Assembly: GCA_013416795.1 (NCBI GenBank)
Contig: RQSC01000882.1
Location: 1-9,304 of the forward strand
Source of the DNA: Prasinococcaceae sp. CCMP 1430
Lineage: Eukaryota > Plantae > Prasinodermophyta
Direction of reading: 5' to 3'
Length of the DNA stretch: 9,304 bases
Part shown: positions 1 through 9,304 of the stretch, one piece after another
How positions within the stretch are numbered: position 1 is the stretch's first letter
Layout of the letters: the number at the start of each line of letters is the position of its first letter
Made by a program: the position numbers and the translations under genes
Notes under the pieces: generated by a model
Told to the model about the DNA's origin: nothing
Databases searched by the model: none
Seen by the model: the letters and a program-made list of their open reading frames with translations, nothing else

Positions 1-128
1 AGGATTATGTGCAGAGCATTTTCTACCTTAAGGCCTGTCAGAAGGCTATCATCTCGTTTTATGCTTGATTCCAAGCCATCTCTTCGTGTTTTGGGTGCCT
101 ATCTTCTTGCCTTGAAGTGATCACAAGG

Positions 129-324
129 AAACCCTAGTCCTGTTAGGGTTTGCACAAATTTGTTTTCCCATTCCAACAAGTGTTGCCCATCTTAGGGTTT
201 ATCAATCTTTTAGGGTTATAGGGCGTTTACTTTGTTCAAGGGCTGTGTTGAATGGATCTCATCGATCTTTCATTGATCTACAAGTGAGGGGCACCATATT
301 TTCCTCTCAAAACCCTAAACCCTA
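129..324. promoter_or_regulatory. Cluster of telo-box / plant telomere-like motifs (AAACCCTA) upstream of gag
   Basis: There are five exact AAACCCTA/TAGGGTTT octamers at 129-136, 144-151, 193-200, 310-317 and 317-324, the last two forming tandem AAACCCT AAACCCT A. TTTTAGGGTTA at 208-218 is a near match. The motifs are directly visible, but a regulatory function is inferred. Confidence 0.55.
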
Positions 325-447
325 GTTTTGGGCAAATTGAACAACATTGCAGCTTATTTCCCATCTCTCTGAGACTTCAACTATTATTGTGACCCTTTGT
401 CCCTGAACGGATCTATTGGTCGTCGAGTGATCGTGTTATCTTGGTCT

Positions 448-3400
448 ATGACCACATCAACTGACGGTGAAACCCATCCATCAGAGCACTCTCACCCCTC
501 TTCAAGTGGTGAGTTACCAACTGAAGGGTTTAACCCTGAAAGGCCTGTCTCCTCACCTCTTACTATTACAAACCCTGTTATTGACGTCAGTTATTCCCCT
601 GGTGACTCTGAGGCTTCTTCACCCTGTAGTCTTGCTAGACAGTCAACTGAGGGTTTAGAAGGGGGGGAAGGTCATCCATTCCTCCAACAACTCCCTTTTA
701 ACCAAAGCGGTGGAACGCGCTCTTTTTGGGAGAACAACTATTTTTCTGACAGTGACTCTGACGACGACATGAGTGCCATCAAGGAGACTCGGGACACTAA
801 GTCCACCCGCCTTTATTCTGGCAATGTGGATGATGGCATTACGCTTGTGCAACTGGGTAATCAGTACAAGCTACGCCTACAAGAGGTCACTGCCAAATGG
901 GCTCGACAGCAGCGAGGTGAAGTTTCCAAAGAACGAGAGGCGGAAGAGCTACGGTTGATGCTCACAGGGGAGGCTGCCATGCTCTTTGAAATGCATTATG
1001 ATGACCTCGTTGCTGACAGTGCGTCTGTATGGGACATTTTTGAGGCGAAAGCTCGCATTGTCTTTCCACCACCTGTTGGGCGTATTATTCAGGAGTTGCG
1101 ACGATTCAAGTTACAGCCGGGTGAACGTATTACTATCGCGCGACTCCGGATTAATAAGCTTTTGTCGCAGTTGGGTCCAAATGATAACATCCCTGAACAG
1201 GAGATTGCTACAAATATTTTGGCCCAACTTCCTGCTAACATCCGCGACAAAGTACTCATGGAGTTTGCTGGTAAGGATGGCAGCCTTGACAATCTCAATG
1301 TTGACCATATTGTGGAAGTGGCTGCAAAGTGGGAGCATGCTCTGGGTTATATTCATGGTTGGGCCACTGCCTCATCTTCATCAACCCCTGCTGCTCACAA
1401 TATTGATTTCACATCCTTGGGCAATCGCAACAATGTCAAATCTGAGAAGTATCAACGCAATCAACAAATGAGGGATTCTGGCTTGCGATGCTTCGGATGT
1501 GGAAAATTGGGTCATTCTCGCAGTCGATGTCCTCTTCATTCTGGAGATAAAATCTGTGATGCTTGCCACAAGAAGGGTCATATCCGCTCAGGCTGCTTTC
1601 AGACCAATCCTACCCTACGTCCCAAATCCACGGAACCTTCTGCCTTCCTATCATCTATGGGTCAAGATGAGGGCCATCTCGGAGACAACCTGTCTGGGCA
1701 TGAAGGTGAGGTGAAGGGTATTGGTAAGGTTCGCTGTCCCGGGTGTGGCAAACCGGGCCACACATCTGATCGTTGCTTTAAAATCCATCCCGAACTCCGT
1801 CCAGGACGTAAGGGTGGTTCCACTGCGCAGGGACTTGGCTCATCCCCTACTGTGAGTAACCTTGATGTGGAGGCCTTGAGGGCTCAGATTGCACAGCTTC
1901 AAGCCAGCGTGAATGATTTGACGCAGAGTGGGGTACGTGAGGCACGTGCTGCTGAATTACACTATGGCAGTTTGAATGCACAGCACGGTGGCCTTCAGTC
2001 TGAATCCTCTGCTAGCGTATCTCTTCCTACGTATGTTTTGGCTGGGCAGAGTGGTTCTTCATTTCCTGACAAGATTGAGCTTCATGAGCGGGTGCTGCGG
2101 TCTGCACGCAAACTTTCAGCGCCAAGTGGGCCGCAGCCACTTCCTGAGGCACCTGATCATGGTCGAGATGTAACCAAGATCACATCAAGGTTGCCTATGA
2201 GCTTTGTGCAATATTCTCCACCACGGGCTGATGCCTCCTCCCTACCCTCACCTCCTCATCATTCTGCCAACCCGGTGCCCCGACTTTCTCGTTTCAAAGA
2301 GACTTCTGCACCCGAGTCTAAGGATATTACTGCTTCTGCTAGTGGTGCCCATAAGGTTGGGCTCACTCTTACCCCCACTGATGTGCGTGCTGTGGCTGAG
2401 GCATGTGCCAATCTTCTGCACAGCACTGGTGACCCTTATCGAAGAGGAGATCGCAGGGATGTCACGCCTGGGGTCATGTATGTTGATAATTCTCAGAAGG
2501 TGCTGGAGGTCAATGGACACTATCCAACCAAGGCCATGCTTGATTCAGGGGCATCCGCTGTTTTCATCAGCGCACCTTTTGCTGAGTTCATTGGGCTGAA
2601 GTCAGAGAATTTCCAAGATGTTTATGCCACATTGAATCAGGCAAGTGGCACCTCTCGCTCCATTGAGAAAATCACCAAGGATCCCATCAACATCACCTTC
2701 AAGCCAGGCACGGGAGACACATGTCTCATTCAATGTCGCTGCATTCTTACGCATGCCTTCGCTTATGATCTACTAATTGGCGGTACCGTTCTCTATCCGG
2801 CTGGGTTTGTCCTGGATTATTGGGGTGAGAAGGCGGAGTACCGTCCAGATTGGCGATTGCTTGATGGTCGACGGGCTTCCTTGCCTGTTACCATGGTTGA
2901 AGGCACTTCGGTGAGTCGGGATTCTGGGAAGGCTCTAACCTTAGAGCTCAACTTCCGCCTTATGGAGCCTATGGTTGCTGCAGCGCATGTTTCAATTCTT
3001 GAGCCTTCGCTGGATGCAGCTTGTTTCAAAGCTGAGGACTGGGAGTGGCAGATCCAAGCTGAAGCTGAGATTGGCACCCTCTCTGCTGCTCTCATTGGTG
3101 CCGTCGGTCAAGTGGTGGGCACCAAGAGCCCTCCTCCTCTTCATCCAGCCCATTGGTCATGTAGCCGAGGCCCACTTGATATGCAGCGTGCTCTCCTCAC
3201 GCACCCTCTCCACCTACCTCTTCCACCTAATACTATCAACCGCACAGTGGACACGCGAGTTCTTGAGGGCTGGCCTCCTCCGCAGGCCTCCACAACATCA
3301 AAAGGACTTGTCGTTTTGGATTTATTTGGTGGATTGGGTACTGGTGTGGAAGCCCTGTTGGCAACTGGCTATCATATCCACAAGTATATATACTGTGATA

Positions 3401-6400
3401 AGGATCCTCTGGCTCAGCATGCTATCGTTCACCGTCTGCTCACTCTTTCGTCTGCATATCCTGCCCAACTTCCACCTACCTCCTTTGCAAGCTGTCTGAA
3501 GCTGCTACCGCAGGATGTCAATCTTGTGACAAGGGATCATCTTGCCACACTTGGGCCTGTGGATATCTTATTCGCAGGCTGGCCATGCCAAGGGGTCAGT
3601 AGAGCTGGCAAGGGTCTTGGGCTTGATGATCCGCGTACTGCTTGCTTCCACATCCTGGTGGATGTTCTGGGTCAACTTCAGAGTATGGATCACAATCGTC
3701 ATATGGCATATGTTCTCGAGAATGTGCCTTGTGACACAGACCACCGTGTGGGTGTTCGAAGGGCTAAGGATGAGTTCTTCCTGCGTTTGGGTCCACCATT
3801 TGCCATGGATGCTGCTGGTGTTGGCTCTTACGCTCATCGTGCTCGGTGGTATTGGACCAATCTGGCGTCCCATCACTCGCTCAACCTGGCTTATAGTCTT
3901 CGACCACCACCTGGACGGGCTGCAAAGGATGTGCTTGATCCTGGCCGTGCCCCGCAAATCTGTCAAATGCCTGATCAACCACCTATGGCTTCCATCAATC
4001 GCGTCGGGGAGGAAATTAAAATCTTTCCTACGCTTCTTTCTTTTCCTGAGAGTCATGCGTTCAACCATGGTGGTCCAGGTATGGTGCGAGACTTGTCCAC
4101 GGGTGCCTTGTCACCGCCCACAGTCACAGAACGTGAACGCATGCTTGGTCTTTGGCCACACTCCACTGCTGCTCCCTCGCTGACTCATCATGATCGGATC
4201 ACTTTAATGGGGCAATGCATCGATCTGCACGCTCTCACTTGGCTTCTTGGAGCTGCTCAACAATTTCAACGCACCCTACACTTGCTGCTTTCCCCTGCGA
4301 GTCATGCCTCTTATGTGCAGCAGCCGGGTGTGCCTACCATGGCAGACCACCTGGCTGGGGGGGGTCAAGCTGATATTGTCACAAAGCAGCAAGCACGAGA
4401 GGTTGCCCCTCAGACCACCAAGGACACAGAGCAATGCTTTCAATGGGATATCAATCCCGAGCTTACGTCTGAGCAACGTGCAAAGGTTGTCGCCCTGATG
4501 GAGAGGCACAGGGATGCTTTTGCGTTCAGTTTAGGGGAACTTGGGCGCTACAATGGCGGGTATTTTGAGATTGACACGGGGGATGCCAAGCCAATTTTTT
4601 GTCGCAAGCAACGTATGGCTAAGGCAGAGGAGGATCTCATGCAAGAGCAAATTGAAAAGTTGCTGAAAGCGGGACTTATTCGAGAATCTTCAGGACCTTG
4701 GGCATCTCAAACTACTATGGCTTTGAAAAAGGACCCTGAAGGCAATTGGACTTTGCGAAGAATGGCGGGCGTTTATGTTCCTATCAACAGTGTGACACGT
4801 GCTGAAGTTTATCATGGCCGTACCCCAGATGAAATTTTTGATGGGCTTGGAGACGATTCGTGGTTCTCCTTGATTGACCTACGCAGTGGTTTCAACCAAA
4901 TTCCGCTCAGGGAGGAGGACTGCTGCAAAACTGCTTTCTGGGGACGCGATCGGCTTTATGAGTGGGTGGTGATGCCTTTTGGCCTAAAGAACTCTGCAGT
5001 ACGCTTTCAACGTATCATGGATCAACATGTCTCACGCCATGATGTGGATGTGTATATTGATGACGTTTTTCCTCACACGATCTCTTTTGACACACATCTC
5101 GAGACACTTGACTGGGTCTTCAATCAGTTCAAGCGCATCAATATGAAGGGTCATCCTGAGAAGTTGCGCCTATGCTATCGTAAGATTGATGCCTTGGGGC
5201 ACACTGTTCTTCCGCATGGGTTGTCTGTTCAAGAGGGGAGAGTTAAGGCTATTGCGTTAATGCCTGAGCCACGTGATGTACCTCAACTGCGAATCATCCT
5301 GGGAGTCGGGAATTACTATCGTCGGTTTGTGGTCAACTACTCTGCTCTCATGGCCCCTCTCACTCTCCTGTTGCGCAAAGAACAACGTTGGGTCTGGCAT
5401 GCTGAACAGCAGGAGGCCTTTCGAAGCATGAAGCTTGCTCTCTGCAATGCACCTGTCCTCTTACGCCCCAACCATCGCCATCCCTTCATCCTTTACACTG
5501 ACTGGTGTGCCAAGGGACTGGGGGGGGTACTCACGCAGGTGGATGTTGAGGGTCTGGAACGTCCTGTGGCTTTCAGCTCGAGGTCTTGCTCACCAACGGA
5601 GGCACTGCTGAGCTCTTACGAGGGTGAAGCATTGTCCGCTGTTTGGAATATCCAGCATTTCCGTTACTTTCTTTTCGGGGTTCACTTCACTTTGGTGACC
5701 GACCATCAGCCACTACAATGGCTCATGAACAACCAAAAGTTGACAGGAAAGCTTGCGCGTTGGCGCCTTATCTTGGCTGAGTATGATTTTAAGGTGGTTC
5801 ATCGAGCAGGGAGCCTGAATCAGGTGGCAGATGCATGCTCGCGCCTGCCTTTACCTTCTTCCAAAGATGACACGGGTGTGGGGCTGGACTCTGATCAGTC
5901 AGCGCTTGACGCATCTCTCCATCCCGCGGTCTTTCTTAGCCACCTCCCTGCAGTTGTTGATCCACCTAATGATGACAATCCCATGCCTCAGAGCCCAATG
6001 GATATTTGGGAGGATGCACCTACTCTTCATTTTCTTCGTGAGGGTGTGCATCTCCCCCATTTGTTACCAAAGGAGAGGGATCGCGTTATGCATCGGGCCA
6101 AGAATTTCCGGTGGGTTGATGGCGGCTTATTACGCGAGGTTCCGGGGAGCCCTCTCTCACCAGGGACGGGTGTTCGCGTGGTTCCTCGTCCTGCTGAACG
6201 TCCTCTCGTCATCCAAGAGATGCACGAACAGATGGGTCACTTGGGTCAAAAGCGTACTCTTGATCTTGTCTCTGCGCAGTTCTGGTGGTGTGGTATGGCG
6301 GGTGATGTAACTGCACAGGTCCGTCAATGTGGACAATGCGATCGCGTGAAAAACTCTTTTAATGCTACCGACTCTACTCTTCACCCCCTACCCATCATGG

Positions 6401-7485
6401 GACTATGCTACCGTTGGTCTGTTGATCTCCTAGGGCCATTGCCAACCACCACTCAGGGCTCATATCGCTTTGTTATGGTTATGATCGAGCATTTCAGCAA
6501 ATGGGTGGAATTGGCTCCTCTTCAGTCCAAGGACGCGGATCTCACTGCCTCTATCTTTCTTGACCGTGTCTTGGCGCGCTTTGGAGCACCTGGAGAAGTT
6601 CTCACTGACCAAGGTACTGAATGGCAAGGATCCTTTGCTGCTCTTCTGCGGCAGGCAAAAGTGGATCATCGTGAAACTAGTCGCAATCATCCGCAAGCAA
6701 ATGGGCTTGCAGAGCGATTGGTTCAGACTGTCAAGAAGACCCTGCGTGCGCATTGTTTGCAACGTGACCGCCACGAATGGCACAAGTGGCTCCCATGGCT
6801 TGCATTGGGACTTCGTTGTAGTGGTCAATCTGCACTTGGGGGTCTTTCTCCATATTTCCTCCTCTATGGTCGTCATCCCTCTCTCCCGTCTTCTCTTCAT
6901 CGTTATGTTCAACATCCTCTGGATCTAGATGACGTGAAGCATGTTCACAAGGCTATCGAGCAGCGTGCTCACCTTTTTCAGCAACTCATGCCTATGGCTA
7001 TGCAGAACTTGGCTATTGCGCAGCAACGTGATACCCTACGATATGCCATGACGCGTAGTGGTCATTTTATTGCAAAGAGGCATCAGTTCAAAGAAGGTGA
7101 CTATGTTTATCTCAAGCGGCAAACGAAGGATACTTTGGACACTGCATGTTCAAAAGTGATTCTTCGTGTCAACAAAGTATTACCAATGGGTGTCTTGGAG
7201 CTTATTGGAAGGTGCGGTAGCACTACGCGTGATAATGTTACCAATTGCGCACCTTGCCATTTGCCCGACATTGATGGGCGCATTGATCCATCGTTGAAGC
7301 GGGTTACGATTCACACAGCATGCGAAGTTTGCAAGTCTGAGGCGGACGAAGCCACCATGCTCATTTGTGATGGTTGCAACTCGGGCTGGCACATGACATG
7401 CTTGCAACCGGTGCTCACTGAGGTTCCTGATGGGGATTGGTTTTGCCCGCGCTGCAGAGAGTCTCTGGTTGGTACGGAAATTTGA
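448..7485 (+). CDS. Gag-Pol polyprotein (2345 aa from the first ATG): Gag, 3x CCHC, protease, DNMT3-like methyltransferase, RT, RNase H, integrase, PHD
   Basis: The frame has no stop from 397 to TGA at 7483-7485. The track starts at TTG 397, a non-AUG codon. The first in-frame ATG is 448 (MTTSTDG) and the next is 769 (MSAIKET), so the true start is uncertain. Domain motifs are listed in the features below. Confidence 0.93.
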   Translation: MTTSTDGETHPSEHSHPSSSGELPTEGFNPERPVSSPLTITNPVIDVSYSPGDSEASSPCSLARQSTEGLEGGEGHPFLQQLPFNQSGGTRSFWENNYFSDSDSDDDMSAIKETRDTKSTRLYSGNVDDGITLVQLGNQYKLRLQEVTAKWARQQRGEVSKEREAEELRLMLTGEAAMLFEMHYDDLVADSASVWDIFEAKARIVFPPPVGRIIQELRRFKLQPGERITIARLRINKLLSQLGPNDNIPEQEIATNILAQLPANIRDKVLMEFAGKDGSLDNLNVDHIVEVAAKWEHALGYIHGWATASSSSTPAAHNIDFTSLGNRNNVKSEKYQRNQQMRDSGLRCFGCGKLGHSRSRCPLHSGDKICDACHKKGHIRSGCFQTNPTLRPKSTEPSAFLSSMGQDEGHLGDNLSGHEGEVKGIGKVRCPGCGKPGHTSDRCFKIHPELRPGRKGGSTAQGLGSSPTVSNLDVEALRAQIAQLQASVNDLTQSGVREARAAELHYGSLNAQHGGLQSESSASVSLPTYVLAGQSGSSFPDKIELHERVLRSARKLSAPSGPQPLPEAPDHGRDVTKITSRLPMSFVQYSPPRADASSLPSPPHHSANPVPRLSRFKETSAPESKDITASASGAHKVGLTLTPTDVRAVAEACANLLHSTGDPYRRGDRRDVTPGVMYVDNSQKVLEVNGHYPTKAMLDSGASAVFISAPFAEFIGLKSENFQDVYATLNQASGTSRSIEKITKDPINITFKPGTGDTCLIQCRCILTHAFAYDLLIGGTVLYPAGFVLDYWGEKAEYRPDWRLLDGRRASLPVTMVEGTSVSRDSGKALTLELNFRLMEPMVAAAHVSILEPSLDAACFKAEDWEWQIQAEAEIGTLSAALIGAVGQVVGTKSPPPLHPAHWSCSRGPLDMQRALLTHPLHLPLPPNTINRTVDTRVLEGWPPPQASTTSKGLVVLDLFGGLGTGVEALLATGYHIHKYIYCDKDPLAQHAIVHRLLTLSSAYPAQLPPTSFASCLKLLPQDVNLVTRDHLATLGPVDILFAGWPCQGVSRAGKGLGLDDPRTACFHILVDVLGQLQSMDHNRHMAYVLENVPCDTDHRVGVRRAKDEFFLRLGPPFAMDAAGVGSYAHRARWYWTNLASHHSLNLAYSLRPPPGRAAKDVLDPGRAPQICQMPDQPPMASINRVGEEIKIFPTLLSFPESHAFNHGGPGMVRDLSTGALSPPTVTERERMLGLWPHSTAAPSLTHHDRITLMGQCIDLHALTWLLGAAQQFQRTLHLLLSPASHASYVQQPGVPTMADHLAGGGQADIVTKQQAREVAPQTTKDTEQCFQWDINPELTSEQRAKVVALMERHRDAFAFSLGELGRYNGGYFEIDTGDAKPIFCRKQRMAKAEEDLMQEQIEKLLKAGLIRESSGPWASQTTMALKKDPEGNWTLRRMAGVYVPINSVTRAEVYHGRTPDEIFDGLGDDSWFSLIDLRSGFNQIPLREEDCCKTAFWGRDRLYEWVVMPFGLKNSAVRFQRIMDQHVSRHDVDVYIDDVFPHTISFDTHLETLDWVFNQFKRINMKGHPEKLRLCYRKIDALGHTVLPHGLSVQEGRVKAIALMPEPRDVPQLRIILGVGNYYRRFVVNYSALMAPLTLLLRKEQRWVWHAEQQEAFRSMKLALCNAPVLLRPNHRHPFILYTDWCAKGLGGVLTQVDVEGLERPVAFSSRSCSPTEALLSSYEGEALSAVWNIQHFRYFLFGVHFTLVTDHQPLQWLMNNQKLTGKLARWRLILAEYDFKVVHRAGSLNQVADACSRLPLPSSKDDTGVGLDSDQSALDASLHPAVFLSHLPAVVDPPNDDNPMPQSPMDIWEDAPTLHFLREGVHLPHLLPKERDRVMHRAKNFRWVDGGLLREVPGSPLSPGTGVRVVPRPAERPLVIQEMHEQMGHLGQKRTLDLVSAQFWWCGMAGDVTAQVRQCGQCDRVKNSFNATDSTLHPLPIMGLCYRWSVDLLGPLPTTTQGSYRFVMVMIEHFSKWVELAPLQSKDADLTASIFLDRVLARFGAPGEVLTDQGTEWQGSFAALLRQAKVDHRETSRNHPQANGLAERLVQTVKKTLRAHCLQRDRHEWHKWLPWLALGLRCSGQSALGGLSPYFLLYGRHPSLPSSLHRYVQHPLDLDDVKHVHKAIEQRAHLFQQLMPMAMQNLAIAQQRDTLRYAMTRSGHFIAKRHQFKEGDYVYLKRQTKDTLDTACSKVILRVNKVLPMGVLELIGRCGSTTRDNVTNCAPCHLPDIDGRIDPSLKRVTIHTACEVCKSEADEATMLICDGCNSGWHMTCLQPVLTEVPDGDWFCPRCRESLVGTEI
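805..1335 (+). other. Gag capsid-like (retrotransposon gag) domain
   Basis: LTGEAAMLF (961-987), SVWDIFEAKARIVF (1024-1065) and IIQELRRFKLQPGE (to 1125) match the L-x-G-x-A, W-x2-F-x7-F and Q-x2-E pattern of retrotransposon Gag. The domain lies just before the zinc knuckles. Confidence 0.65.
1489..1776 (+). other. Three CX2CX4HX4C nucleocapsid zinc knuckles
   Basis: CFGCGKLGHSRSRC (1489-1530), CDACHKKGHIRSGC (1555-1596) and CPGCGKPGHTSDRC (1735-1776) all have exact CCHC spacing. Confidence 0.95.
2500..2820 (+). other. Retropepsin-type aspartic protease domain
   Basis: AMLDSGASAVFIS has the catalytic DSG at 2542-2550. The downstream DLLIG (2767-2781) matches the conserved C-terminal hydrophobic-G motif. 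Confidence 0.9.
3307..4260 (+). other. C5 cytosine DNA methyltransferase domain, DNMT3-like
   Basis: The ordered C5-MTase motifs are I DLFGGLG (3319-3339), II YCD (D 3397), III QDV (D 3514), IV DILFAGWPCQ (catalytic Cys 3586-3588), V GLDDPR, VI YVLENV (ENV 3718-3726), VIII AHRARWYWTN (R 3838, R 3844), IX TERERMLGL (ERER 4129-4140) and X RITLMGQCID (G 4210). AHRARWYWTNL and VTRDHLATLGPVD closely parallel DNMT3A AHRARYFWGNL and VTQKHIQEWGPFD (comparison from memory). Confidence 0.93.
4441..5220 (+). other. Reverse transcriptase domain (Ty3/Gypsy type)
   Basis: GLIRESSGPWAS, IDLRSGFNQI (catalytic D 4876), KTAF, MPFGLKNS (4972-), YIDD (5053-5064) and LGH (5194-5202). Confidence 0.97.
5482..5850 (+). 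other. RNase H domain (Ty3/Gypsy type)
   Basis: LYTDW (D 5500), YEGE (E 5626), VTDHQPL (D 5701) and ADACSR (D 5830) supply all four acidic catalytic positions. Confidence 0.95.
5998..7266 (+). other. Integrase: HHCC zinc-binding domain, DDE core and SH3-like C-terminal region
   Basis: H 6223, H 6238, C 6328 and C 6337 form the HHCC. The core is WSVDLLGP (D 6424), LTDQG (D 6607) and HPQANGLAER (E 6712), with 34 residues between the second D and the E. FKEGDYVYLK at 7087 starts the C-terminal region, which has no canonical GPY/F. Confidence 0.95.
7321..7455 (+). other. PHD finger (C4HC3) at the polyprotein C-terminus
   Basis: CEVCKSEADEATMLICDGCNSGWHMTCLQPVLTEVPDGDWFCPRC has C 7321, C 7330, C 7366, C 7375, H 7390, C 7399, C 7444 and C 7453, plus the typical P-x-G-x-W-x-C. 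Confidence 0.96.
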
Positions 7486-7561
7486 TCTATATTGGTGTTT
7501 GCGCACTCCTCCTAACTAGTGGTATATTATGCAAAGCCTGTTCGCTGGCTCCATCCTTTGC

Positions 7562-7569
7562 AGGGGGGG
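7562..7569 (+). other. Putative polypurine tract (plus-strand primer)
   Basis: AGGGGGGG lies 77 bp downstream of the stop codon and is followed directly by TG (7570-7571), the usual PPT/3' LTR junction. The tract is short. Confidence 0.6.
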
Positions 7570-7855
7570 TGCAAGGAGTTGTGATGCGTACCATTTCACA
7601 CACTATCTTTACGCCACACTTTAATCATATTTTTCGTGATGCTGCGTGGTGGTGCATGTGGATCGCAAAAGTGGTGTCCACAGGACAAGCAGCTGGCTAA
7701 ACCTCAACCTCGAGTGGTGTCCGACATAGTTGAAGGCACGAGCTATGGAGTTGCGACAGCTGTCATGCTCGTGCGTCTCCGCATCGGTATTTTGTCGTGT
7801 GTACTGATCAATCATGGCTCCATGATGATTATGCATAGCTTCTAAATTAATTGCA
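7570..7855 (+). repeat. Candidate 3' LTR (start fairly likely, end tentative)
   Basis: It starts TGCAA directly after the PPT. The complementary TTGCA at 7851-7855 would give a 286-bp TG...CA LTR. No second copy exists in the window, so the LTR could be much longer. Confidence 0.3.
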
Positions 7856-8161
7856 ATGCATTATTACTACTATTTGCGTCCCTTTCCGTTGTTACGTGAG
7901 TCAATTCATGTTTGAGGGCGCTTTGCTATTTAAATTTCGTCACCTGTGACAGCCTATGTTGGATTTGTGGTGAATGCTTGTGCTTCCACGAGCAAACGCG
8001 CCTCACATGTAGCGTTACAACTATGTTTGTCACGTTCGCGTACTCCTCGAGCGCCCCCGACGCGCGAGTTAAGTGCTCGTGGCATTTTCCTAAGGCGTGC
8101 GACCCTAAACATGTGCCCAATGTCACCCAGGGCGCAATTTTGGGCCTGTCGCGCCTTAACG

Positions 8162-8235
8162 CGCGACTTTTCGTCGAAATCGCGATTTTCGCGCGATTTT
8201 CGCTATTTTCGCGATTTTCGCGCTGAAACGCGCGA
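8162..8235. repeat. CpG-dense short tandem array, unit CGCGATTTT
   Basis: Units lie at 8181-8189, 8192-8200, 8201-8209 (CGCTATTTT) and 8210-8218, with a variant CGCGACTTTT at 8162-8171. There are 17 CpG in 74 bp and an embedded palindrome AAATCGCGATTT at 8177-8188. Degenerate copies occur at 8261-8268 and 8271-8279. Confidence 0.85.
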
Positions 8236-8403
8236 CGTAGCGTCGAAGTTACCTACTTAGCGCGATTTGGGCGATTTTTGGGTTTTTGGAGTCGTTAGGA
8301 GTGCGACTGCGCGCTTATCGCGCCCGTAGCTATAGTTCTGATCTTTATACACTGTCGTAGCTATGTGGACGCGTTATAGGTGCCCACCCAGTCCCGACTG
8401 GGT

Positions 8404-8917
8404 TAGATTTTTGCGTGACAGCGGCGGCGGCGCATGGATTTCTGAGATCCATGGCGGATTAGTCATGCCGCCATGAAACATGGTTTCTTGGCGCTCAGGT
8501 AGCCATTTTGCATCCCGTTTGGCTTGACAGATCGCTTCTCCTTGCCATGCGGACCTCATCTGGACTTACTGCAGTGAAAATGGTGGAGTCTTCTTCATTA
8601 TCCTGTGGGTTCAAGGTCGTGTGCTGCAAAACATGGTGAGTCCAATGCATGTCCGTGAGCTACATCCGGTTCTAGCGATCAATATGAAAGGCTATATGCT
8701 TCCAAAATCAACCATCTGACAGGGATAAACTGCTGAACCATGCTGGAACAACCCACGTTTGCATCTTGAGCTCACACATCGCTGTCACAGCAAATTCTCC
8801 ACGAACTCATGAAACCTCATTGTGGGCATAACACGCATAACCATTAGCATTATTTTGTGCTTCTATGGCTTGCTCTATGCCCGGCCTGATGGCCATCCCC
8901 TTTCACGCAAAAATCTA
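8404..8917. repeat. Perfect 15-bp inverted repeat pair (possible MITE-like element with TA target duplication)
   Basis: TAGATTTTTGCGTGA (8404-8418) is the exact reverse complement of TCACGCAAAAATCTA (8903-8917). It can be read as TA + 13-bp TIR ... TIR + TA. The repeat is directly visible, but the MITE call is inferred. Confidence 0.45.
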
Positions 8918-9304
8918 TCTTCTTTCACACAAGATTGTGAGGGTTACAACGATCTCATCATGATGCAACGTGAGTTGTTTTAAACCATGTTATGTATTTG
9001 GAATCCATTGAGGGTTTGTTGAACCCCATTTCTTCATGAGACCCATGGTATAAATTTGTGCACTGTTGACAACTTCCCAACTGAATGAAGTGTCATATGG
9101 GAGACATTTTGTTCAAAACGTTCATGATGTCGCTTTGAGTCACAATTTTCTTTGCTACGATTCAATCTCGTGATCCATCATTCTTGTTTAGGCCTGGTGT
9201 TGGCCATCCTTGTTTTGTTTTGCCTGTCTGAAGGCAACTCTCTTGGTCACGAGGTTTGGTGATACGTGTTGAGGCCGTCTAGGCCATCCTTTGATCTTCG
9301 TGCG

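Follow-up and report, generated by a model that had tools for sequence, protein, structure and literature searches.

A DNMT3-type methyltransferase domain and a predicted H3K4me0-type PHD finger in a Ty3/gypsy-type polyprotein from Prasinococcaceae sp. CCMP 1430

Introduction

Retrotransposons that carry the enzyme that normally silences them are a recent and unexplained finding, and the published cases with a DNMT3-type cytosine methyltransferase (DNMT) comprise one charophyte Gypsy family and dinoflagellate elements. Here we describe a Ty3/gypsy-type polyprotein from Prasinococcaceae sp. CCMP 1430, encoded on a 9,304-nucleotide stretch of DNA (contig RQSC01000882.1 of assembly GCA_013416795.1, positions 1 to 9,304 of the forward strand) that was analysed as a whole and is referred to as the window. 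The polyprotein contains both a DNMT3-type domain and, at the C-terminus of its integrase, a PHD finger.

Two described systems carry DNMT3 within Pol. KnitGypsy-Dnmt3 of Klebsormidium nitens (PMC5890265) is, like the window, of Gypsy type, and its Pol includes an unrearranged DNMT3 whose catalytic residues are conserved; further accessory domains of DNMT3 have not been reported for it. By description, which is the only level at which the two were compared, it differs in that a PHD finger goes unmentioned in the text and supplements of that paper (PMC5890265) and in its DIRS-like arrangement of repeats, of which the window shows no sign. No Klebsormidium protein was present among the named hits of our word searches or the ten top clusters that were looked up, and the K. 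nitens elements might carry the same PHD finger, unreported. SymbioDIRS-Dnmt3 of Symbiodinium resembles the family of the window in having DNMT3 in the Pol open reading frame (ORF) and in occurring in two architectures that differ in the order of their domains; it has been shown to methylate CG de novo, and self-methylation of its cDNA has been proposed (PMC5890265). It is, however, a DIRS element of a dinoflagellate host, with a tyrosine recombinase rather than a DDE integrase and without a PHD finger.

Other systems share the histone reader. Chromoviruses have a histone-reader domain fused to the integrase C-terminus as the window does, although theirs is a chromodomain and the window has a PHD finger, predicted to belong to the unmodified-H3 class. 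REM1 / Gypsy-7a_cRei of Chlamydomonas reinhardtii is a chlorophyte Gypsy element with a PHD finger annotated next to its integrase, and PHD has been called a common accessory domain of Chlamydomonas transposable elements (TEs); unlike the window, it has no DNMT in the domain list of the published figure, where a domain could have been missed given the weakness of the Pfam DNMT model in this family. EpiLTRs (preprint 10.64898/2026.05.21.726589) are long terminal repeat (LTR) elements of Cymbomonas and Euglena that, as in the window, combine DNA methyltransferases and a histone reader on one element, but the combination is DAM (6mA) and a DNMT4-related DNMT with a chromodomain, not DNMT3 with a PHD finger. 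Finally, animal DNMT3A, DNMT3B and DNMT3L share with the window the catalytic fold and signature motifs and a genetically linked zinc-finger reader of histone H3 unmethylated at lysine 4 (H3K4me0), which in the window is a predicted one. In animals this reader, the ADD domain, is adjacent to the DNMT3 catalytic domain and regulates it in cis, unlike that of the window, which is a classical PHD finger on the integrase and probably part of a separate protein after processing. ADD_DNMT3 is reported to have arisen in bilaterians and cnidarians and to be restricted to them.

DNMT3 inside a Gypsy Pol (in K. nitens), PHD as an accessory domain of chlorophyte TEs including a Gypsy element, PHD-TE fusions in general, and LTR elements that combine methyltransferases with a chromodomain have all been published. 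Full-text literature searches found no description of the combination of DNMT3 with an integrase PHD finger, of its breadth in Chlorophyta, or of the two architectures reported below.

Results and Discussion

A Ty3/gypsy-type polyprotein with two additional modules

The window contains an open frame (397 to 7485, forward strand) with a first ATG at 448, from which an uninterrupted polyprotein of 2,345 amino acids plus stop is read. Pfam matches in order along it are an aspartyl protease, DNA_methylase (PF00145), RVT_1, RT_RNaseH, Integrase_H2C2, rve and PHD (PF00628). The ORF is confirmed as a Ty3/gypsy-type polyprotein, Gag-protease (PR)-DNMT-reverse transcriptase (RT)-RNase H (RH)-integrase (IN)-PHD, in which a standard Pol carries two extra modules: the Pol order is PR-RT-RNase H-IN with a DDE integrase, the DNMT is inserted between PR and RT, and three CCHC zinc knuckles can be read from the translation upstream of the protease. 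Neither the ORF nor its domains are a matter of chance: the frame stays open for 7 kb, and hundreds of relatives conserve the domains.

A preliminary description of the window placed the two modules at 3307-7455, and this span is accurate, 3307 lying just upstream of methyltransferase motif I and 7455 being the last base of the PHD finger, at its last Cys pair; the stop follows nine residues after that pair. The polyprotein does end in a PHD finger as that description held, and does so at the integrase C-terminus where chromoviruses carry their chromodomain, for which the window has no Pfam (Chromo) match. The window shows a DNMT3-bearing Gypsy type with a predicted histone reader on its integrase, in a clade of hundreds of 50%-identity clusters. 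Coordinates of all features are given in Table 1.

The methyltransferase domain

The Pfam match of the methyltransferase is weak, at 24.3 bits (cut-off 22) over aa 1022-1094 only, although above threshold. The C5-methyltransferase motifs I, IV, VI, VIII, IX and X are nonetheless present in order and unrearranged: DLFGGLG (motif I, nt 3319), GWPCQG (IV, 3577), ENV (VI, 3718), HRARWYW (VIII, with RARW from nt 3838) and GQCID (X, near 4213), with the catalytic Cys at aa 1047 in the canonical PCQ of motif IV. An alignment of the window domain with 27 divergent relatives shows conservation of FGG.G of motif I, the motif IV Cys, ENV of motif VI and the Gly of motif X, and likewise of the HR.R..WTN and ERE..G blocks of motifs VIII and IX. 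By its motifs the domain looks catalytically complete.

Searches of the PDB place the domain with DNMT3. As a single sequence it matches DNMT3A at 2e-8, with the range for DNMT3A, 3C and 3B being 2e-8 to 5e-6, and DNMT2 (9e-4) and M.HhaI (0.02) more weakly. A profile of the family matches DNMT3A at 1.6e-23, DNMT3B near 4e-20, plant DRM at 2e-11 and DNMT2, HhaI and HaeIII near 5e-7, and DNMT1 is not among its matches at E <= 0.01. An AlphaFold model of the window domain built on the family alignment (predicted local distance difference test [pLDDT] 92.4, predicted TM-score 0.90) superposes on DNA-bound DNMT3A/B structures, and the top 50 PDB matches of the model in Foldseek are all DNMT3A, 3B or 3C, with a target-normalised TM-score of about 0.8. 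Sequence and predicted fold together confirm the domain as DNMT3-type, far nearer to DNMT3A/B/C than to any other methylase. No model of the PWWP or ADD domain matches the window at E <= 0.1, and neither domain is in the Pfam annotations of 155 relatives. The DNMT3-like catalytic domain without ADD or PWWP that had been proposed from the sequence is therefore borne out by the PDB search, the family profile, the predicted fold and these Pfam negatives; PWWP and ADD are not defining for DNMT3 outside animals (PMC5890265).

Many of the relatives have a clear DNMT domain and no PF00145 annotation. Because PF00145 detects this DNMT family only marginally, Pfam-based censuses undercount DNMT-bearing retrotransposons, and Pfam annotation was for the same reason rejected as a DNMT census of the relatives. 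A profile word search at stand-alone length for cellular DNMT3 outgroups yielded only fragments of the TE family, followed by distant DNMTs.

The PHD finger

The PHD finger (PF00628, E 8e-11) is an intact C4HC3 module with the spacing C-x2-C-x11-C-x2-C-x4-H-x2-C-x14-C-x2-C, and none of its eight zinc ligands varies across 30 aligned relatives. The residue that corresponds to the cage Trp of methyl-lysine readers, third after the fourth Cys, is Gly in the window, as it is in 92 of 97 family fingers. The loop between the second and third Cys is acidic (SEADEA), which is also a family feature, and with Met-Leu-Leu before the third Cys, Asp after it and a Gly-Trp-His motif makes up the features of the H3-binding class that the family conserves. 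In PHD fingers generally, the acidic-wall (Asp/Glu) class and the cage Trp are nearly mutually exclusive, and K4 methylation weakens binding in the acidic-wall class (Bortoluzzi 2017, PMC5415848).

The window sequence and the family profile have the same best PDB matches, namely CHD4 PHD1/2, KMT2C/D, PHF12, KDM5 (Lid, 5A, 5B and 5D) PHD1 and WSTF, together with ATXR5, BAZ2A/B, DPF2/3, KAT6A/B, PHF21A (BHC80), ORC1b, UHRF1/2 and AIRE; aromatic-cage H3K4me3 readers are not present among the top 60. An AlphaFold model (pLDDT 80 overall and about 90 over the finger core) has as its Foldseek neighbours BAZ2B, BAZ2A (including an entry 'in complex with unmodified H3K4 histone peptide'), UHRF1 with an unmodified H3 tail, DPF3b, Lid PHD1, BHC80, ATXR5-H3 and ORC1b with unmodified H3. 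The H3K4me0-type assignment made in the preliminary description thus finds agreement in the neighbours, which are readers of unmodified H3, in the Gly that replaces the cage Trp and in the C4HC3 pattern, and, in the register used here, departs from the class at the acidic wall. As judged from homology and the predicted fold, H3K4me0-type is the best reading of this PHD finger, with that one signature residue lacking in this copy.

Relatives and their two architectures

Relatives were collected by two polyprotein-length word searches, with scoring on the DNMT region in the first and on IN-PHD in the second, which together gave 155 proteins with 31-53% identity. Their domains were mapped by phmmer and then, for the DNMT, by a family hidden Markov model, which rescued six DNMTs that single-sequence phmmer had missed and a remnant in a seventh protein. 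All of the named sources are Chlorophyta, of three classes: Haematococcus lacustris, Scenedesmus sp., Chlamydomonas eustigma, Pleodorina starrii, Volvox africanus, Tetrabaena socialis and Tetraselmis striata, and in addition Pyramimonas, from a fragment matched in the stand-alone-length DNMT search. The remaining relatives are metagenomic.

The relatives have two layouts. Type A, which is that of the window, is PR-DNMT-RT-RH-IN-PHD and ends a few residues past the PHD finger; type B is RT-RH-DNMT-IN-PHD, with the DNMT about 125 residues upstream of the integrase (median). Both RT-RH and IN-PHD are complete in 122 proteins, of which 110 are type B, seven are type A and five are without a DNMT. 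The split between the two types has a support of 100 in both FastTree and quick IQ-TREE trees of RT-RH and IN-PHD, which were unrooted and from which the DNMT was excluded. In a tree of the DNMT only, the nearest rows to the window are again type A proteins, and the TE DNMTs all stand apart (support 98) from the outgroups, which were distant DNMTs and included no cellular DNMT3. The methylase has been retained in this clade at two different positions in Pol, which may stem from a single capture with later rearrangement or from two separate captures.

An exhaustive phmmer search with the window DNMT against 1.84 billion representatives of 50%-identity clusters gave 214 matches at E <= 1e-30 and 625 at E <= 1e-10. 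Identity to the representatives listed reaches at most 46%, in a partial match, and is 40-42% over the full domain; the ten top clusters that were looked up are all metagenomic. Polyprotein scans of JGI metagenome contigs and IMG/VR gave no near-identical copies. From these comparisons the window belongs, as a divergent member, to a large clade that is mainly chlorophyte, and has no close relative in the collections searched. Within the clade the IN-PHD fusion is essentially universal, and the DNMT is nearly universal at its two alternative positions.

Type B polyproteins run on for a median of 326 residues past the PHD finger, in a semi-conserved tail without a Pfam match (e.g. P0005, residues 1791-2132). 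In one relative (P0138, 1426-1544) a chromodomain (Pfam Chromo, 4e-12) comes after the PHD finger, which makes two histone readers on one integrase, and a G-patch (PF01585) is present in several others. The closest type A relative, P0051, is encoded on a contig (L001:1-18357) that is a head-to-tail array of an 8,262-bp unit, made up of a 7,077-bp ORF and 1,185 bp and repeated 2.2 times at 99.8% identity; the array might represent LTR-internal-LTR copies in tandem, a circle with one LTR, or a cycle in the assembly.

Co-occurrence of the DNMT and the PHD finger

The DNMT is present in 117 of the 122 relatives with complete RT-RH and IN-PHD, and the PHD finger in nearly all. The co-occurrence across related elements that the preliminary description asked after is therefore found, although the relatives are phylogenetically non-independent and the comparison has low power; a correlation of DNMT and PHD cannot be tested within the clade, because the PHD finger is nearly fixed and hardly varies. 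The same description held that independent distribution of the two domains would speak against their coupling. Within the clade they are not independent in the plain sense, since almost every complete member has both. Outside it they occur separately in published elements: DNMT3 in DIRS elements with a tyrosine recombinase, DNMT4-like domains accompanied by chromodomains, and a PHD finger without a listed DNMT in Gypsy-7a/REM1 of Chlamydomonas.

The relatives without a DNMT are P0089, the pair P0064/P0088 and P0131, which retains a 12.6-bit remnant, and all keep an intact PHD finger; they sit at three places within the type B side of the tree (moderate placement support of 82-91, type B side 100), and the DNMT appears, from this placement, to have been lost about three times with the PHD finger kept. 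The gene models of P0052 and P0049 are truncated and do not inform on this point. In the other direction, the type A protein P0109 (2,352 aa, contig L002:16900-17500), otherwise intact, ends just before the PHD position, and the 450 nt of contig that follow contain no PHD in any frame; it is the only case seen with a DNMT and without a PHD finger. P0035 is apparently frame-shifted at the PHD position. Because the DNMT-less relatives keep the PHD finger and P0109 keeps the DNMT without it, the two modules are separable in both directions.

The pattern looks like that expected from co-inheritance of two useful, separable modules, and is no proof of coupling. Only one observation leans toward the two being selected together: the DNMT has been retained at both of its positions, and always in elements with a PHD-integrase. 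The DNMT of the window sits between protease and RT, with RT and RNase H separating it from the PHD finger some 1,000 residues away; any coupling in the window element would have to be in trans.

Possible roles of the two modules

The best explanation of these observations as a whole, which we hold to be probably correct, is that the window corresponds to the internal region of a Ty3/gypsy-type LTR retrotransposon that was recently intact, with two chromatin-related accessory modules in one polyprotein, a PHD finger that steers insertion to H3K4-unmethylated chromatin and a DNMT whose substrate is the DNA of the element itself. Once reverse transcription is complete, the PHD finger of the integrase would tether the intasome to nucleosomes whose H3 tail is unmethylated at K4, and would thus place insertions away from active promoters, by analogy with the tethering of chromovirus chromodomains to H3K9me; chromodomains are cited as directing chromovirus integration to marked chromatin. 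The DNMT, either released or still fused to a neighbouring Pol product, would methylate the element DNA, at the cDNA stage or once newly inserted, in line with the proposal of de Mendoza et al. for DNMT3 domains encoded in Pol (PMC5890265). If it is not released, the window DNMT would most naturally travel with RT, which is a better fit to methylation of cDNA than to chromatin-templated methylation. What the sequences show directly is the identity of the domains, their intactness, their arrangement and their distribution in the family. The histone specificity, the methylation substrate and the proteolytic separation are predictions, as is any coupling: the two modules are co-inherited and functionally compatible, and any dependence of one on the other is hypothetical.

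Several observations weigh against this explanation. The acidic-wall position of the PHD finger (five residues before the third Cys in the register used here, equivalent to BAZ2A E1689) is Ala in the window, where the acidic residues near the wall are Glu at -6, Asp at -7 and Glu at -9, and only 40 of 97 family fingers have Asp or Glu at the wall position, with 53 of 97 having one at -6. Activity of the methyltransferase across the family is not assured by its sequences, in that 57 of 110 type B relatives have ECQ in motif IV, with Glu for Pro before the catalytic Cys, an unusual but conserved replacement, and 20 of 110 have the PCQ that the window has. The sole Gypsy-borne DNMT3 to have been tested, KnitGypsy-Dnmt3 of K. 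nitens, gave no detectable methylation in yeast, a result that its authors called inconclusive (PMC5890265). The depletion of CpG in the ORF (observed/expected 0.61, compared with 1.05 for GpC and 1.35 for TG+CA) is on the supporting side in that it fits past CpG methylation, but it does not indicate the enzyme responsible, and host methylation could equally have caused it. Finally, an LTR pair was not found in the 9.3-kb window by a repeat search or by blastn of the 447-nt 5' flank against the 1.8-kb 3' flank; the flanks probably end inside long LTRs.

A stronger proposal, put forward in the preliminary description, is that the two modules form a coupled writer-reader system, in which IN-PHD picks H3K4me0 chromatin and the DNMT pre-methylates the cDNA to match it, as camouflage or self-silencing, with cooperation in the virus-like particle or pre-integration complex; this would reproduce the ADD-methyltransferase logic of animal DNMT3. 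In its favour, the two domains are both there in intact form, about 117 of the 122 complete relatives retain them together across a deep divergence (35-45% DNMT identity) and with the DNMT at either position, and the PHD class matches that of H3K4me0 readers. The short distance from DNMT to integrase in type B makes a DNMT-IN-PHD product conceivable there, though not in the window, and such a product would come nearest to 'DNMT3 logic'. Against this, the near-invariance of the PHD finger makes the association inseparable from shared ancestry, the apparent DNMT losses and the single PHD absence separate the modules, and the window DNMT is far from the PHD finger. With ADD_DNMT3 reported as an animal innovation there would be no host template in green algae, and the suggested mimicry of a host DNMT3 is not upheld, since the named relatives are all green-algal and the likeness would be convergence at most. 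We regard the coupled system as unlikely. It is similarly doubtful that a widespread green-algal Ty3/gypsy lineage assembled its own de novo methylation system from a DNMT3 writer and an integrase H3K4me0 reader, convergent with the animal ADD rule and with the pairing selected as a unit; there the DNMT-IN-PHD product of type B would act on the nucleosomes of the insertion site, and the two products of the window would cooperate in the pre-integration complex. If the modules do cooperate, this would be a convergent reinvention of the H3K4me0-gated rule for de novo methylation in animals.

The PHD finger may instead not read a histone mark, and be a structural zinc module, a binder of some other host protein or an unselective nucleosome or DNA anchor for the integrase. 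The Ala at the wall position is in keeping with this, as is the presence among the nearest structural neighbours of UHRF1-type fingers, which read R2 and not K4, and PHD fingers with atypical, non-H3K4 targets have been described (PMC10124903). The strong conservation in the family of the H3-binding class features listed above, the top sequence and structure neighbours, which all bind the H3 N-terminal tail, and a position that equals that of the chromodomain in chromoviruses argue the other way and leave a non-reading PHD finger with a small likelihood. It is more improbable still that the DNMT does not methylate element DNA and acts instead on RNA as a methyltransferase, binds DNA or RNA without catalysis, or methylates the host genome off target to the indirect benefit of the element: RNA methylation by TE-borne DNMTs has been raised (de Mendoza 2018), the K. 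nitens Gypsy DNMT3 gave no DNA methylation in yeast (PMC5890265) and many relatives have ECQ for PCQ, but in the window every canonical motif of a DNA C5-methyltransferase is present, PCQ, ENV and RxR among them, its predicted fold superposes on DNA-bound DNMT3A/B and the SymbioDIRS DNMT3 domains methylate CG de novo (PMC5890265).

Several of the host genera are culturable, and the clade offers a concrete, tractable system for two questions: whether cDNA is methylated by the DNMTs that TEs carry, and whether reader domains determine where new insertions land as well as their epigenetic state.

Feature coordinates and flanking sequences

The positions of the polyprotein domains and of two candidate elements in the flanks are listed in Table 1.

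Table 1. Features located in the window, with the evidence for each
Feature	Coordinates	Strand	Evidence
Five exact telobox motifs AAACCCTA, both strands, 5' non-coding, upstream of gag	129..324	.	Motif count
Polyprotein ORF Gag-PR-DNMT-RT-RNase H-IN-PHD, intact, single	448..7485	+	ORF calling, Pfam
Three Gag CCHC zinc knuckles, C-x2-C-x4-H-x4-C, aa 348-361, 370-383, 430-443	1489..1776	+	Translation
Retropepsin-type aspartyl protease, aa 687-749; active-site DSGA starts at nt 2542	2506..2694	+	Pfam PF13975/PF13650, motif
DNMT3-type C5 cytosine methyltransferase domain, aa 948-1276	3289..4275	+	Pfam, PDB sequence search, profile, predicted fold
Reverse transcriptase; YIDD at nt 5053	4645..5367	+	Pfam RVT_1, motif
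RNase H domain of RT	5395..5784	+	Pfam RT_RNaseH / RT_RNaseH_2
Integrase: H2C2 zinc-binding 6190-6354, catalytic core rve 6412-6690	6190..6690	+	Pfam PF17921, PF00665
C-terminal PHD finger, aa 2292-2336	7321..7455	+	Pfam PF00628, PDB search, predicted fold
Candidate polypurine tract AGGGGGGG (7562-7569), then TG, possible 3' LTR start	7562..7571	+	Read from sequence, inference only

The 5' non-coding region is enriched in the telobox, a plant-type telomere-like motif, with five copies of AAACCCTA observed compared with 0.14 expected and at least five in none of 200 shuffles. Telobox motifs in plants recruit telomere-repeat-binding factors. On the 3' side, the first kb past the stop (7486-8500) is CpG-rich, with an observed/expected ratio of 1.31 that stands well above that of the ORF, and may be the U3/promoter of the 3' LTR. 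Short CGCGATTTT-like tandem repeats are also present downstream of the stop, most of all at 8140-8290.

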